Positions 1 to 30,850 of a DNA stretch of 64,000 bases are shown one piece after another (within the stretch, counting starts at the first letter, position 1; every line of letters begins with the position of its first letter). Made by a program: the position numbers and the translations under genes. The notes beneath the pieces are model-generated. The model saw nothing but the letters and a program-made list of their open reading frames with translations. It was not told the origin of the DNA and did no database searches. The DNA comes from Trichosphaerium sp. ATCC 40318 (taxonomy: Eukaryota; Protista; Tubulinea), in NCBI GenBank assembly GCA_038496445.1, contig JALMLS010000143.1:310001-374000 (forward strand). Reading direction: 5' to 3'.

Positions 1-322
1 ACTATGATTTCCATCACTGGTATTTGTTTGTACTGTCAATGCTCGTTAGCGATTTTTGGTTGTGCTATTTGATGTTTGGTACCTCAAACAGCCCAAAGTA
101 TACGCAAGACCATAGACCAACGAAGGTGAAAGCAAAATGGACGACAGATAGTGTCGTGCCTAAAAAAGTGCCATGTTAGCCAAAACAGCAACAAAAAGAG
201 CATTCAGTACCGAATTTAAAGCCGTGCCACTTGAAAAGCATTTTGTTGCAGAATACTATAGACACGGAAGAAAAGTAATTCGCACACATGTAGAAAGTGC
301 CCCATGAGAAAGGCGTGCTCAT
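1..322 (-). CDS. SLC35E/triose-phosphate-translocator family transporter, 5' part (runs off window edge)
   Basis: Spliced translation MSTPFSWGTFYMCANYFSSVSIVFCNKMLFKWHGFKF|GTTLSVVHFAFT..; closely matches the paralog at 21506 with the same intron positions. Confidence 0.85.
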
Positions 323-594
323 TGTGTGGATTCAATTATAAGATTTTGTTTAAAAACAGTATTTGACCAATCAATGGCTTTCTATACGCCAATACAAGCT
401 ACCAAATAATTGTCAACGTGGTTGACACAAGCAGACTTATTAAATTGCTTGTTTTTTGCTTACGGTTAGGTTACCTGTTTATTTTTGGTGCTAAAGCTAT
501 CTGGAATGCTTCTAAAGGTTATTATGACGTTTATGTAGCTTAATACGGTCAGCGTGAATTCTTGTCAAAATTTGGCAATAAACTCGAGGATACC

Positions 595-3036
595 ATGTAT
601 TTGTTGGCGGTGATAGTCGTTACTGCTTTAATCCTCGTAAACCTCCTTTGGATACGCCGTATAAAGGTAACTAGTCTGAAGTTTGTTAAAAACCACTTTA
701 ATCATATCTACAGATTCGATCAAACGCGCCAGGTGCGTCAAAATAGCTGTAGAAATTAAAAAGTTCGTTGTACAAATACAACTCACGTGAGACGCCAAAA
801 AAGGCGTTATTAGGCAATTGAATATTGCTTCACGGTGCAGTTTGCTTTCTCAGATACAACGACAGGTGAAACTGCGAAAATTTTTAACTGTCTTCAACAG
901 GGCCTTTTATTCCAATCGCTTTCTTTGGACCTTTATTTCATGAGTTATTTTTCTGGTGGTATGACTCTGCATCATTTATGACGAAGAGGAAGACTAATTT
1001 TCGTGTAGGTCATACAAAAATGAAGGACCATACGAACTTGCTATGAGATGGACGAAACAGGCAAGTCTCAACTTGATATTTTGGCTATTTTACTTATACA
1101 AACAAAGTATGGTCAAACTTTTCTTGTAAATGGAGCCACACAAGACAGCATGATGATCGTAGCTGACCCTGACTGCATCCGTCACATACTAAAGGACAAC
1201 TTCAAGAATTACATCAAAGGTAGTAATTTTTTGGCTTAGATCGTCATGATTACTTGATTAATTGATGTTGATCAAGGTCATCATTTCACATCTTCTATGA
1301 AAATATTCCTTGGTGAGGGTATATTCAACGTTAATCATGGTCTATGGCGTCAACAGCGCAAGACAGCAAGTCACTTATTCAAAACAAGAGAAATTCGAAA
1401 AATGTTTGAAATCTTTCATCAAAATGGAAACAAGGTAGACTATCTCGCAATGTGCACCTCACTAAATATTATACTTGAATAGGTTATGGCCATTCTAGAT
1501 AAGAGTGCTACAAGTGCTGAAACGGTCAATATTTCAGAATTGTTGTCTCGCTTCACTTTAGACTCCATAGGCGAAATTGCATTTGGTGTCCAATTGGTAA
1601 CAATCGTAGTACCTTTGTTTTTGTTTAATGATGTATTTCTAGGATAGCTTAAAACCAGGTACACTGCCAAACTTTGCTGTAGCTTTCAACGAAGCGACCA
1701 GGCTATGTGGAGAGTTATGGGTATCTCCTGTATTTATGGTATGAAATATTGAAAGTAACTTTGGCATTCATACAATCTTTTTCAGATGACAGGAACAGGA
1801 TGGTTGTCCGATTATTTGGTACCAGAAGTTCCAATAATAAAGAAGCACATGGCTGTACTTGATCAAACAGTATATAGAATTATTGAAGAGCGTAAACACG
1901 CTAAAGATATTGATCAACGAAGTGTGAGTTTTTTCGTTTGAAGGATCCCTCTAAAACCACGTGATAATACCAATAATATTTTCGCGGATGTTTATTGGTA
2001 GAGTGCACTCTGACCAACTCATTTACTAGGACTTGTTGTCTGGATTTTTGAACCTTGAAAAAAAGACTGGCGAGAGTTTTAGTGATAAGTACCTTAGAGA
2101 TATAACTTTGAACTTTATGTAAGAGCCAACGCAAATTCCCAGCTGTTAATAATGCATTTAGGTTGGCTGGACGCGATACAATATCGGTAGCCTTAGGCTT
2201 CTTGTTTTACGAACTTGCAAGAAATGAAGCCAAGATGAAATTGCTTCAAGCAGAAGTAGACCAAGTACTAAGCCAAAACCTACCAGACTATGATATTGTA
2301 AAAGACTTGCCATACACAAAGGTAATTGTATATCTTAGCATAGTATCTTATAATAATAGGCTTGCATCGACGAGGCATTGAGGCTTTATCCACCAGTTCC
2401 ATTTGACCCAAAACAAGCTGTTGAAGATGACGTACTACCTAATGGAATACGTGTACCAGCAGGTGTACGTTGACTCTCCTGTGACAGTATTGTATTAACA
2501 ACATTGCTTTTTAGACAGAAGTAATATGGTCAGCTATGGCACAAGGAAGGAGTCCGCACTGGAAGAATCCAGAAAAATTTGAACCTGAAAGGAACGCATG
2601 ACGTTGATTTAACTCTTTGTAATTTACTTTAGGTTTCTTAACAGAGAAAAACAAGGACTTAAACCTATTCACCCGTACTTATTCGTACCATTCCAAGCGG
2701 GACCACGTGTATGTCTTGGGAAGATGATGGTACGAGAGGCCTTTTCAAATATGAAACGCCTTGCTTATTCTTTTAGGCGTATCAAGAAATGTTGTCATTG
2801 ACTTCAATGATTGCTCAAAAATTTAATGTACACACAGTACGTTATAATAACATTTCTGTAAAACTGGTTGTACACACTCAAACTACGCACTAGGTACCAG
2901 GAGAACAAGAAGTCACATTCGCTGGCGGGATTACACTAAGTGCAGCTGTAAGTCTTGTTTTCTTACATTCCAAAAAAATCCCATTAATTTTTTTGTGCAG
3001 GGTGGCATCAAATTACAGTTTTCTCATCGTAGTTAG
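595..3036 (+). CDS. Cytochrome P450 (CYP86/CYP704-like), multi-exon
   Basis: N-terminal [26 protein letters not shown]-helix, [20 protein letters not shown] heme motif. Confidence 0.95.
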
Positions 3037-3444
3037 AATGTATACCGTTATGTTCTGTACACAACGGGACGTAGTAAATTTGCGTATTTGTATGCAGTGT
3101 ATTGGTAGTGTTTTGTGGAGTTAGGTGTTATTAAATGAAGCGAAAATACATTCTTATTGCTGTTAACGTAATTGTATGAACTTTACTCTACTAAAGGACA
3201 CTGAGGAGCGTTTTTCCGATGCGTTTGTATTGAGTGCTAGTGTTTCGGACATGAAATCTCCGGTTACCATTATATTTAACGGTCGGGGTACTCTGCACGT
3301 ATAGAGGTAGTAGAGAGAGCAATATGGGCGTGGACAAAAAATACCAAGTCCACCGTGTTCTTCGGAGCAAGTGTTTTTAACGCTCCATATTATTGACTAG
3401 CAAGGTTGACCACTACTGGAGAGCGTATGTGGTAACAAAAGTCA

Positions 3445-6317
3445 ATGTCCTTGGAAAGCCGATTTCTACAGACGCTACAGAACTCTAAAGCAAAAGAAAA
3501 GTTCCGTTCTTTCCTTCGTGGTGAATATAATGACGAAACACTCGGTATGCACAGATCTGTTAGAAGTACAATTATGCTCATTATTTGTAGCGTTTTATGA
3601 AGAAATTCAGTCGTATGAGCAGATTGACGGTTCTGATGAAAGACGAACGCGGTACAATCACAAACAACCATTTTTAATTGTCAAACGCATGCCATTAGTC
3701 TGTTTATGCATTAAATGACCTTTAAACCCATAACGCCTGCTTACCACCTTTAGCGCTGCAAAAATGTTTGAAACGTATTTAACAGAGTTTTCGCCACGCT
3801 CTGTTAACGTTGGTCCTCGATCTATACAAGCTATGCAAGAAAAGCTGACACAAAAAAATAAAACGCTTGAAACAAACATATGGGACGACATTAAGCGCGT
3901 ACGCACTTTTAGATACAGTCTATACTCATTTTGGGCAGTGTTGCCATAAAAAACCTGAATAAACACCACCTTTAGGAAGTCTTTGTTCTTATGGCAAACG
4001 ATCCGTTTACACGATTCATGGCCTCAAAGGAGACGAAGAGTAAAAGTAACAACAACAAAAACAAAACATTTACTGCAGATCAAATCATATCAAATACCTT
4101 CGTAAAAGCGTTCCACACATCATGTGATAAAACAGATGGTAAGCAAAACGTCTTCAAAAAAAAACTCAGACACAGAATGCCAGAAAACAAACTACAAAAA
4201 AAAAATACAACACGCTCCGCTCGTATTTTTATAATGTTGTTTGATTAGATCTAAATGACTTTTGTAGATGTAGGATGGGTCTACAATGGTGAAAAAAGAA
4301 ATATAAAGCTTTACACTAAAGACTGTAATTCAAGTACTGCATATGCGTGCAAGGTAAGTACAGTAGAGATGTTTTTTCTTGATTTGAAAAAAAAATCCAT
4401 AAAAATGATTTGTAATTTCTTTCGTTCCTAAAGGGTCTATCTAAGCGTTAATATTTTTAGGGCGTTGGTGTTGTTGATGCATCACCTGAAGAAGTAAGTT
4501 TAACATCAATAGATCTTTTTTGGTGACATTTGTTGATGTTTTTTTTTTCACAGTTGGTTTTTGCTTTATCCCTCTAATAAGTCATTCTAGGTTGCAGACA
4601 ATTTTATGGCGTTAGATGATAGAAGAAAGAAACGTGATGCTCATTTTGTAGAAGTAAGTCATGACTCATGAATCATTTAAGAGCTTGTACCAAGCTTCAT
4701 GCTTTGGTCGTTTGTTACTTTGTTATTTATGTTGTGTAGGGTTGGGTGCTGGAGAAGCTATCCCGATCGGATGATGTAGTATACCAACACTTTAAATTAA
4801 GTGCTACATTATTTAGCAAACCACTAAGACGCGATTTTGTGCTTGCGCGTTGTCATAGGGTTGAGCAAGACGGTACACACATTATTGTATGTCGTGATAC
4901 AACTCATGAAGATGCTCCAGCTCCACCTAAGGTACGTATAATACGTAAAATGAGTTCAAGAACTAGAAACTATGGTTGTAGTGTTGTACAATTTTATTTT
5001 ATTTTATTACCTCCAAACGCTTAAAACAATGTGTACAAAGTTAATTTTTTTTCTAGGGTTGTTCTAGAGCAATTTGTACATTGGTGGGATATAAAATAAG
5101 TCCAATGAGGTATTGATTTATCAAGGTATTCTACTTCTCTTTATTCACCTTCTTTTTCTTCTTTAGGGGTAAGGCTCAGTCATCTTTAGTATATTCTATA
5201 CATGAGTATGATCTTGGATCGGGTAAAGAGATTACACCCAAAGTTTTAAGAGAAATGGGTGAGTCACGTGCCATGTTTTTGATTAATTTTTTTTCGAGTA
5301 TAACATCTTTGTTGCTTGTTTTTCTTTGCTGTAATGTATCAAATTTGAAGGAACATTTATATCTAAATCATCGTTTAGAAGCTACAAGGCCTTTAGTGAT
5401 AAATAAGTTGCAAAAAGCGCTCAGAAAATCTGTAGACGTAAGTTTGTTGTACTTTCCCTTCTGCGACCTACTTTGTTTGTCAATGATGTCTAATGCCGTT
5501 TATAGTCTGATATTGATGATGACTTCAAGAGTAGAGATTCTGTGTCACCTAAAAATTCGGGTTACAAGGGTGCTAAGTCTAAAGCAGGCATCTTCGATTT
5601 TGTGAAACGTATGTATTAGAATTTATTTGTTTTTGTTGTTTGCTGTACTGATAATCGAATTAAGATCGTAACAGAAAGTCTGAGCCAAAACGTAGACTTG
5701 CAAGATCACCTGGCGTTGAACGTTTCCGTACTACACGTGATATTTATGTAAAACTAATGCAAACAAGTAGAACGAACTCAATCCTTGGAAGAGATAGATA
5801 CAAAACTGATGGCTAGTGATGAGTCTCCAATTCACAGTATGTTTCTTGATTTTATTATTATATCTAGACCTTTTTTCGTGATGCTGATGTGTTACTCTAT
5901 AGGTGGTAAAGTGGCTGTGCTTAAGCGTAAGAGGTCACAAACAAGTATGTCAACAAGAGTGTTAATTAGATTTTTCATGCTAAATGCTTTGCTTAGTTGA
6001 TGTATCTGATATTGAGGAACAAGCTCAAGTAGCTTCTGCTCCAAGAGGATTTTTAGACTATATAACTCCAATTAGAGAAGAACCAGAATATAAATCAGCA
6101 CCAGCCTCAGTTAAAATAAGACGTGAGTGACATTCTTCTACACCTTTTTTTTTCTCGTTTTTTTCTTCTTTTGCGCTAATTTTGTTGTCACGCAGGAAAA
6201 AAGCGTATTGATAAAATAAGAACACCTAAAACACCTAAGACACCAAAGACACCCAAAACGTCTAAAACGCCGAAGAGCCCACCGATGATAAAAGTGAGTC
6301 AGGCTAGTAATGCGTGA
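3445..6317 (+). CDS. RGS domain + START lipid-binding domain protein with basic Ser/Pro-rich tail
   Basis: FRSFLRGEYNDETL|AFYEEI..MFETYLTEFSPRSVNV..LMANDPFTRF (RGS); GWVYNGEKRNIKLY..KPLRRDFVLAR (START); KTP repeats. The 3' end is ambiguous (TGA 6315-17 versus a GTGAGT donor). Confidence 0.8.
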
Positions 6318-28173: not shown

Positions 28174-30850
28174 TTATTCTTGTTTATTGGCGTCTTTGAT
28201 AACAAGCTTCTCACGCAAAGCCATAGCGCCTAGGTACTGATTCTTTGCTTTAGCTGTCATTACAGAATTAGATTCACGTGGTACAACAGTACGACATAGT
28301 AGCAAAAAGCCAAGTACAATATTTTCAGCAACGAAAATAATAATGGCTGTAGCTGGTTTGGACGCTGCAGGAATAGTTTCGAAGGTTATTAAACATAACT
28401 AAAGTAGATCATTAGGTTGCGATGTAAGCTTAAGATCAAACTCGTACGCCAATGTTTGTGAAAATGCACAAGACACCAATAGCAAGAAAAATGTGTCGCC
28501 AAATTCCTTTAAAAAGATTAACAGAAATAGCTTTTTTATGTTAAATACCAATAGATGTTGTCTTGAACGGGATAGCTCTCCTATTGCCAAATAGAAGGAG
28601 CAATGCTGACGCTTTTATGCGGAAGTAGTTACCAATCTAGGATAGCTGTCAGCTACAAAGTAAAAAATTATTTCTCACCATTGTAAGAATTGAAGCTAAT
28701 GGAAAGGCTGCAGCAAAGAGAAGCATGTACCCGTATTGGAGTGCTACAATAAGTTAGATAATGTTATATTGAATGTATTAAACTTTCCTGCTTCATGAAG
28801 TAAGGCTCCTGTGCCCTTAAAGGCAGGAAGGAGATGTTGAATATAAGCTTCAGACATTTTCTTATCTTTGAACTCTGAATTCCTTACAGTAGTGCCTTTG
28901 ATTAACAGTCCTGTAAAGATAAATCTATGCATATGATTAAATAATAAGTGATACAACTCGCTATAGTAGCAATGAAAAGAAAAGAGTACTTACGGAACAA
29001 AATACTCCTGGAAAATATGTTGAACTTCCGCCCTAGAAAATAAAATTACAAGTTGGGCTTTCAGGCGTGCTGCATCTCTCTAAAAGCATTCTATATTAAT
29101 ATCACACCATATTTATGATTTATACCATGATGAAGGCGTAGTGGAAGAGAATAAGATAGTTGTTTGTTATTGTAATAAAGAATATTTTGGCTGCATATTG
29201 ATTTTCCCATTCTGCATAAGTCCGATAATTCTCCCAATCTGTGAGCTTTTCTGCAACACGTATGAACACCTTAAAATCCCATCACGTCAACGATTTATAA
29301 ACCCAGTGCGTGTACCTTTGTTGTTAAAGTTACTACAAGAGCATGTATGATAGGTGGTAATAGACCCAATAAAAATCCATCATCAGGTGAAAAATAACCT
29401 TGGAGAATAGGGAAATATAAAGCACTATCTTCATTTACTAATCCTTGAAGATTTAGAGAAGCAACGATACTTAGCAAAGAAGCAACCAACTATAAAAGTA
29501 AGTAATTAGGAGATTCAGTAATTAATCGTTGTACCATTAGACCAAGGACAGGTATACTCACACAATACTTAAGTGCTCGCTTCCAAGTTGGATAATAAAG
29601 TTCACATCTCTAAACAGAATAATCAACAAAACGTTGGATCGGTATAGTCTTGTAAGTATCATACATTTGTTACTGGGCTTATACGAGATGTTCCATAGAA
29701 TTGTGGTCTAACATGGTTGTGTAATACTTTAGAACTGACACCCCATCTGTGAACTTGCGTTGCGTTCTTTCTACGCCAAAAAATATTTGCCAAGATTGCT
29801 AACCTTACAGTGAATACAACAATACAATACACATGATATACCCCAAAAGGAAACAAATAGCGCAAAGACAAATACAAGAGGATCCTGAGCTCGACACCTA
29901 TCAGGTTTAAGTAAAAGGTGACTATGAAAACCGTACACAGCTGATACGTCCCAATCTGCAACATGTTGATCAAAACGATGACCTAGGGAACACAAGAAGT
30001 GACGCAGTGGGCCTTGGCCTACATCAAAGTAGTTCATTACAGTATACGCCGACGATCCAAGGGAAAGCCACATTAACCACCAAACATAGAACTCTAAAAT
30101 AGATGTCATTGACGTTTATGTAATTCACAATCGCTCGTACGTAGCCAAGTAAAAAAATACGCAACACGCTCACCAAAGTACTGTACAAAACGTTAGTATC
30201 AAAACTTCATTGGTCAACACTTTTGTAAATATCTTAACATACATCTTTGAGAGAGTCGATATCTAGTTTTCTGTCGGTTACAACTTTTTTTAGAAGCTGT
30301 TTTCTGTACTCAAAACTACCGTGTAAAGGGAAGTAACTCTGAATGTACCCTTTCTTTGCGTATTGAGGCACTAATTGTATTTTTCAATAACGCGCAATAG
30401 TAACAAGTATTCGTACGGAGTGGTTCGTAGTCCTTTAGTTTGCGCAATGATGTATCTGTCTTGCGTAATCGAATACGCTGTAGAATAGAAATTATGACGA
30501 GAACGCTTTCACTGGAGGTTAGAGGCTTCCTGTAAGATGGGGCAAGCACATTAGATGCTCCCTAATGCTTTTTAGCTATGCATACTTACTACAACTTTGA
30601 GTACATCACAGAGAATGTGACGCTCTTTATAAAAGGTCTCTGAATCCGTTGTTAGCTGCCAAACACTGTATTTGTTGTCAACTGTAACCGTTTTGTTGAT
30701 AATGAGCCGTTGCTCTACTAGGCGCTCTTCCAGATACTGCAAATATGTTTTTAGTTTTGTGGGCGATATATTACTCCCAAACGCTTTGTTAGTTCCCGTT
30801 TTTATCAAGATCGCGAAAAAGCACTCCTGCGCAGTGTTCTCCTGTTTCAT
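28174..30850 (-). CDS. Anoctamin/TMEM16 family protein
   Basis: YFPLH, DYFGERVAYFFTWL, LTDWENYRT, QYGYMLLFAAAFPLA, IGIWR; start approximate. Confidence 0.9.

Follow-up and report, generated by a model that had tools for sequence, protein, structure and literature searches.

A 41-nucleotide intron with GA-AG ends, absent from the mRNA of a cytochrome P450 gene in Trichosphaerium sp. ATCC 40318 and probably removed by the major spliceosome

The dinucleotide at the 5' end of an intron is near-universally GT. GA-AG introns are nevertheless known in several lineages (PMC7072748), which agrees with an earlier prediction made for the DNA studied here (hereafter, the original prediction), where such introns were called rare and known from few lineages. 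Short U2-type introns of the form GA...AG, preceded by a conserved exonic AG and with an A in position +3, have been described from a copepod, Eurytemora affinis, and a tunicate, Oikopleura dioica (PMC7072748, Frey and Pucker 2020, and works cited there). In these animals GA-AG introns outnumber GC-AG introns and make up a few percent of all introns (PMC7072748). The intron described in the present study resembles them in its short length, its probable type and its flanks. It differs from them in its host, an amoeba-like protist, and in the remainder of its donor, which suits a variant U1 (ACGUAC).

Another known case is the GA donor of human FGFR genes (Brackenridge et al., via PMC7072748), which is used efficiently at an essential coding position, as appears to be the case here. 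According to PMC7072748, that donor relies on a canonical GT located six nucleotides in front of it, whereas at the present locus no GT in a usable phase lies within about 60 nt upstream; a rescue of the FGFR type by a nearby GT was therefore rejected. GC-AG introns, which are the major non-canonical U2-type class and are frequent in this genome, are alike in that strong pairing elsewhere makes up for a U1 mismatch at +2, and one of them lies in the same gene as the intron studied here. They differ from it in having C, not A, at +2. The closest parallel to the U1 of this organism is found in Mastigamoeba balamuthi, for which a U1 with ACGUAC (G at position 5) and a preferred donor GUACGU have been described (Roy and Bowser 2022, bioRxiv 10.1101/2022.06.08.495308). 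Unlike that case, the genome here is AT-rich (37% GC) and retains one U1 gene with a canonical ACUUAC end. GA-AG introns are not dealt with in the passages of the preprint consulted, and our literature search found no published account of GA-AG introns in amoebae.

The P450 gene and the sequence of intron 13

The DNA analyzed is a window of 64,000 nucleotides of contig JALMLS010000143.1 (310,001 to 374,000 of the forward strand), and the positions given below are those of the window unless another sequence is named. The window is AT-rich (GC about 37%), and short introns are densely packed in it. Positions 595-3036 of its + strand contain a gene that is divided into 17 exons by 16 introns and has a CDS of 1497 nt (498 codons). 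The introns measure 38-168 nt (intron 10, for example, occupies 2119-2161 (+) in the gene model), and the frame of the spliced CDS, which we joined locally, runs without a stop over the 498 codons.

The exons were compared with Pfam one by one, not as a joined protein. Exons 6, 7, 11, 12 and 14 matched PF00067, and the matched profile positions were colinear, namely 74-122, 127-161, 272-325, 326-360 and 391-416, respectively. The bit scores of exon 11 (37.1) and exon 12 (23.4) were both above the cut-off of 22.8, and those of exons 6, 7 and 14 were 16.8-21.9. Exon 11 also matched PDB chains of P450 BM3-like and CYP3A proteins. The spliced frame carries the P450 motifs, that is, LAGRDT of the I-helix (AGxxT), EALR (ExxR), PERF and the heme-binding FxxGxRxCxG. 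Judged from these sequence features, the gene is a cytochrome P450 gene (PF00067), and its family is not in doubt.

Intron 13 of this gene lies at 2592-2632 (+), is 41 nt long, and reads GAACGCATGACGTTGATTTAACTCTTTGTAATTTACTTTAG. Both of its terminal dinucleotides, the 5' GA and the 3' AG, were read from the 70.3-Mb assembly, in which the locus is single copy. Exon 13 (2515-2591, +) ends with AAA TTT GAA CCT GAA AG, that is, KFEPE and the two leading bases of an Arg codon. Exon 14 (2633-2729, +) begins with G TTT CTT AAC, of which the first G belongs to the same Arg codon, and contains the heme-binding Cys loop. Joining 2591 to 2633 yields KFEPERFLNRE followed by the heme-binding motif; the intron is thus in phase 2 and interrupts the Arg codon of FEPERF immediately 5' of the heme-binding exon. 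When the intron is read through, the frame continues as AGG AAC GCA TGA and meets a stop at 2599-2601 (+). Upstream of 2592 there is only one GT in phase 2, at 2529, the use of which would remove 21 codons, and only one GC in phase 2, at 2556, the use of which would remove 12 codons. The PF00067 match of exon 12 reaches profile position 360 and that of exon 14 starts at 391 with its residue 4, leaving 30 profile positions, for which the model gives 29 residues. This comparison indicates that nothing is lost or gained at the joint of exons 13 and 14.

The donor of intron 13 is GAACGC (2592-2597, +) in the assembly sequence, and it is preceded by the exonic AAG. The original prediction had stated that the PERF motif requires a GA-AG intron at 2592-2632, that reading through it hits a TGA, that the lone upstream GT in phase 2 would be destructive, and that an exonic AG precedes the donor; our analysis reproduced all of these points. 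A TTAAC at 2609-2613 (+), about 20 nt 5' of the 3' splice site, is the likely branch site. Among 487 predicted introns of this organism, the motifs TTAAC, CTAAC and CTAAT were enriched 3.8-4.8 fold in the 3' part. The acceptor is a T-rich TTTAG, and both the branch motif and the 3' end resemble those of the organism's other introns.

We looked for other genomic sequences with which base 2593 could be compared. No second copy or haplotig of the region was found in the 70.3-Mb assembly, and a metagenome scan in which base 2593 of the genomic donor was set to N yielded 0 matches. As for paralogues, the genome contains at least nine other P450 heme-loop exons (L011-L019). Four of them have no intron at the PERF position and read straight through PERW, and five have an intron about 4 nt upstream of the position of intron 13, with the canonical donor GTACAA in L017 and L018. 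Because none of the nine shares the position of intron 13, conservation is unusable as evidence.

Absence of intron 13 from the mRNA

Contigs of three public RNA runs were aligned to positions 1-6000. Runs X1 and X3 come from one sample of study P1, and run X2 comes from study P2. The runs contained 0.30-0.47 of the words sampled from 500-3200, which is about the share of spliced mRNA. In all three runs, spliced contigs were obtained that lack exactly the 41 nt of intron 13. The cut at 2591/2633 was inferred from the coordinates and the depth of the contigs, not read off directly, as follows.

Contig 5 of X2 is 1588 nt long. Its record 1-145 lies on 3001-3145 and its record 434-540 lies on 2358-2464, so that 288 nt are left for 2465-3000. 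This is the length of exons 13 to 16 (77+97+60+54), and the five introns removed between 2465 and 3000 total 248 nt (50+41+47+57+53). The covered bases per 200-nt bin were then calculated as depth divided by contig depth. In the bin 2401-2600, 139 bases were covered in each of X1, X2 and X3, where a retained intron would give 150. In the bin 2601-2800, 123 bases were covered in X1 and in X2, where retention would give 153, and 49 in X3, the contig of which ends at 2679. The values of 139 and 123 are exactly those predicted by the spliced model when the joint is placed leftmost (2589>2631), and the aligner placed the other joints leftmost in the same manner ('cut +2'). No contig retaining the intron added depth over intron 13, whereas X1 has unspliced contigs over introns 6-9.

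Because of a 3-nt ambiguity, cuts of the types AG..TT, GG..TA, GA..AG and AA..GG all yield an identical mRNA. It is only with the GA..AG cut that an AG acceptor stands behind a T-rich tract. Taken together, the coordinates and depth of the contigs of X1, X2 and X3 demonstrate that the 41-nt segment is missing from the mature mRNA.

The same kind of calculation bears on other parts of the gene. Intron 4 (1061-1107, +) is a GC-AG intron with the donor cag|GCAAGT and the 3' end ACAAAG, and X2 covered 146 bases of the bin 1001-1200, compared with 145 expected if it is spliced. A micro-exon of 19 nt (ATTCGATCAAACGCGCCAG) lies at 714-732 (+) between introns of 47 and 168 nt; its use fits X2, in which 70 bases of the bin 601-800 were covered, the value expected if the micro-exon is used. 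In X3, a SMART template-switch oligo abuts position 567, which identifies this run as cDNA and places the 5' end of the cDNA near 568, 27 nt before the ATG at 595. In the adjacent gene (3392-5944, +), RNA supports 14 GT-AG introns, which measure 40-129 nt and are on average longer than those of the P450 gene.

The RNA samples also contain sequence differences. X3 differs from X1 at 1167 and 1836, where it carries T at both positions, and further differences occur at 609 and 612. Together with the intron differences of X1 given below, these sites indicate that the culture contains at least two haplotypes, and a T at 2593 in an expressed haplotype is therefore possible. The X2 contig equals the assembly in all of the exon pieces listed, save two bases of the 3' UTR. 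The unspliced contigs of X1 cover 1274-1737 (introns 6-8) and 1895-2059 (intron 9) of the + strand, and the differences of X1 from the assembly within introns are C>T at 1448, an insertion of GTA after 1605, T>G at 1616 and a 1-nt deletion at 1979. In the contigs of a further run, X4, eight C>T differences are clustered in about 110 nt (3744-3851, +), which has the look of a conversion-type library or a divergent strain.

Frequency of GA donors and their pairing with U1

A census of donor dinucleotides based on an open frame on both sides was dropped, because it had a background of about 30% for every dinucleotide. It was replaced by a self-trained gene and intron finder using dynamic programming, in which all 16 donor dinucleotides were allowed and the non-G classes served as negative controls. 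The census covered the window and 200 kb of contig C8, that is, 264 kb, and was ab initio, not RNA-based. The finder recovered exactly 23 of the 30 RNA-supported introns, and its long non-GT calls resembled noise.

The finder predicted 733 introns, with GT in 690, GC in 22, GA in 4 and each other class in 0-4. Two of the four GA calls were longer than 200 nt and noise-like. The other two, both in the window, were short and credible: they are intron 13 of the P450 gene and a predicted intron of an anoctamin gene, and they correspond to 2 among about 506 short predicted introns of the 264 kb. In the unbiased 200-kb sample of C8, none of 379 short introns was of the GA-AG type, which places the share of GA-AG below about 0.8%. 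GC-AG introns made up about 2.6% of short introns and were roughly ten times commoner than GA-AG introns (22 versus 2 credible). GA-AG is therefore rare here, unlike in Oikopleura and Eurytemora. Outside the window, GA calls did not rise above the noise of the census, in which the control classes had 0-4 calls each. GA-AG is not pervasive in this genome.

The commonest donors among the 690 GT introns were GTACGT (121), GTACGC (48), GTGCGT (37), GTATGT (36) and GTAAGT (33). The original prediction had regarded the donor of intron 13 as the local consensus GTACGC with A at +2. This was close, but GTACGC ranks second (48/690) and GTACGT first (121/690). As judged with a position weight matrix, the context of exonic AG, +3A and +5G is present in about 1 in 6 GT donors and in both GA donors of the window.

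The second candidate GA-AG intron, in the anoctamin gene, is 44 nt long, lies at 28744-28787 of the - strand and has the form cag|GAAAGT...TTGTAG. The exon downstream of it matches positions 334-353 of PF04547 (Anoctamin).

The genome contains at least ten U1 genes, as judged from Rfam matches, and 5' ends were read for the ten matches except C39:222248. In all four copies over the Rfam cut-off, and in most of the others, the 5' end is UUACGUACCUG, in which position 5 is G where the canonical end has U, and the Sm site is normal. The genes with this variant end are L002 1501-1664 (G000:C122:19165-19328), L003-L005, L008 and L009. A pattern count gave nine U1-like copies of the form ACGTACCTG...CTGTGATCA, and in the pattern search the U1 match C13:182234 began with ACGTACCTG. 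One copy, L006 1501-1660 (G000:C289:12258-12417; 63.5 bits), has the end UUACUUACCUGG with the canonical ACUUAC. The prevailing U1 end is thus ACGUAC, compared with the canonical ACUUAC, and the dominant donor GTACGT matches it. The box of U6 is the canonical ACAGAGA.

The donor AAG|GAACGC pairs with the U1 end ACGUACCUG at -2A:U, -1G:C, +1G:C, +3A:U, +4C:G and +5G:C, and four of these pairs are G:C. The exonic AG, +3A, +4C and +5G have been kept, and the donor therefore pairs with the organism's own U1 (ACGUAC). The predicted duplex has an energy of -6.4 kcal/mol and is stronger than those of 23% of the predicted GT donors; with T at +2, the predicted value is -11.1 kcal/mol. The anoctamin donor cag|GAAAGT suits the canonical U1 isoform better, with a predicted value of -8.7 kcal/mol and pairing at 8 of 9 positions. 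A search for a compensating U1, in which U at position 7 would pair with +2A, gave 4 pattern matches compared with 5 in a reversed control, and none of them was U1-like.

The consensus of U12-type donors is RTATCCTT. The donor GAACGCAT of intron 13 lacks this box and is therefore not U12-type. The search for U1 and U6 variants thus found a U1 that is mostly ACGUAC, a canonical U6 and no change that compensates for +2A, and these results fit the view of the original prediction that the spliceosome of this organism tolerates A at +2. The genome also contains a U6atac gene (L045, G000:C20:307774-307894), which exceeds the Rfam cut-off with 51.9 bits. A candidate for U12 (L044, G000:C49:145161-145303) is weak, with 39.2 bits, under the cut-off. 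A minor spliceosome is probably present.

Explanations of the GA donor and its significance

We consider it highly likely that intron 13 is a genuine U2-type intron, removed by the major spliceosome, with GA in place of GT. Its removal can be pictured as follows. The intron would be recognized as a short, intron-defined unit of 41 nt with an ordinary branch site (TTAAC) and acceptor (TTTAG). The donor AAG|GAACGC would retain each of the other strong contacts with U1 (-2, -1, +1, +3, +4 and +5), and because these contacts are kept despite the A.A mismatch at +2, U1 would still mark the site. The catalytic core would then accept the A at +2. Splicing would restore FEPER|F and the heme-binding loop, where translation would otherwise end at the TGA of 2599. 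The pairing of the flanks with U1 seems to rescue the +2A site, TTAAC presumably acts as the branch point, splicing appears to be efficient, and the expressed allele presumably carries the A at 2593.

The last point matters for the main competing explanation, according to which intron 13 is an ordinary GT-AG intron with the donor GTACGC. On this view, the A at 2593 would reflect either a mistake of the assembly or consensus or a T>A variant that makes the assembled haplotype a null allele, and an allele with T would be the source of the spliced mRNA. One T>A substitution in the second commonest donor of this genome does yield the exact sequence observed, and the RNA samples contain at least two haplotypes (sites 609, 612, 1167 and 1836 and the GTA behind 1605). 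The A is the base of an assembly in which the region is single copy and to which the metagenome scan added no match, and none of the unspliced RNA contigs reaches 2593. This explanation has to account, however, for a second GA donor within the same 64 kb, and two independent T>A hits at +2 are improbable. It must also account for the full strong context in which both GA donors stand, and for an X2 contig that is spliced and still agrees with the assembly in its exon pieces apart from the 3' UTR. In view of the second GA donor of strong context, and of the share of GT donors that have this context, we regard this explanation as unlikely.

It could also be argued that the gap in the contigs is not the work of the major spliceosome, being caused either by a template switch of reverse transcriptase between the AGG repeats at 2590-2592 and 2631-2633 or by a U12-type event. 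The 3-nt ambiguity of the joint suits the former, and the U6atac gene and the weak U12 candidate suit the latter. The gapped form is, however, the sole form assembled in the three runs of two studies, and it restores a conserved motif in frame. In its length, its branch motif and its T-rich end with AG, the 41-nt segment resembles the other introns, and the donor is without the U12-type box; we therefore consider this explanation very improbable. Still less credible is the idea of a decaying pseudogene with an apparent intron by coincidence. The non-canonical dinucleotide is the only feature that speaks for it, and the gene has an open frame of 498 codons after splicing and all of its P450 motifs intact, and several runs show it to be expressed, with complete splicing.

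On the preferred explanation, that of a U2-type intron with a GA donor, we can only speculate about why such introns exist in this organism. By changing to ACGUAC, U1 gained a further G:C pair, at +4 beside the one at +5, and this may relax the need for U at +2. GC-AG introns, at a few percent, and GA-AG introns would then persist and spread, for example, via gene families, and donors of the GAACG type and of the GAAAGT type may each be served by a different U1 isoform (ACGUAC and ACUUAC, respectively). We think of this as a tentative idea that is more doubtful than probable. If it is true, the organism would be a natural system in which recognition of +2 can be split between U1 and the catalytic core.

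GA-AG is a rare but known kind of intron, and we see no new splicing system here; a lone rare GA-AG intron would not surprise a splicing specialist. The practical consequence concerns annotation. Gene finders limited to GT and GC donors truncate or mis-join the P450 gene before its heme-binding loop, and the same holds for the anoctamin gene. For the biology of splicing, the present finding adds, beyond animals and dinoflagellates, a lineage whose major spliceosome very probably removes a GA-AG intron. It does so alongside a U1 that has co-evolved, at its 5' end, with the consensus of the donors, and the rules of +2 recognition thus become testable in a protist.
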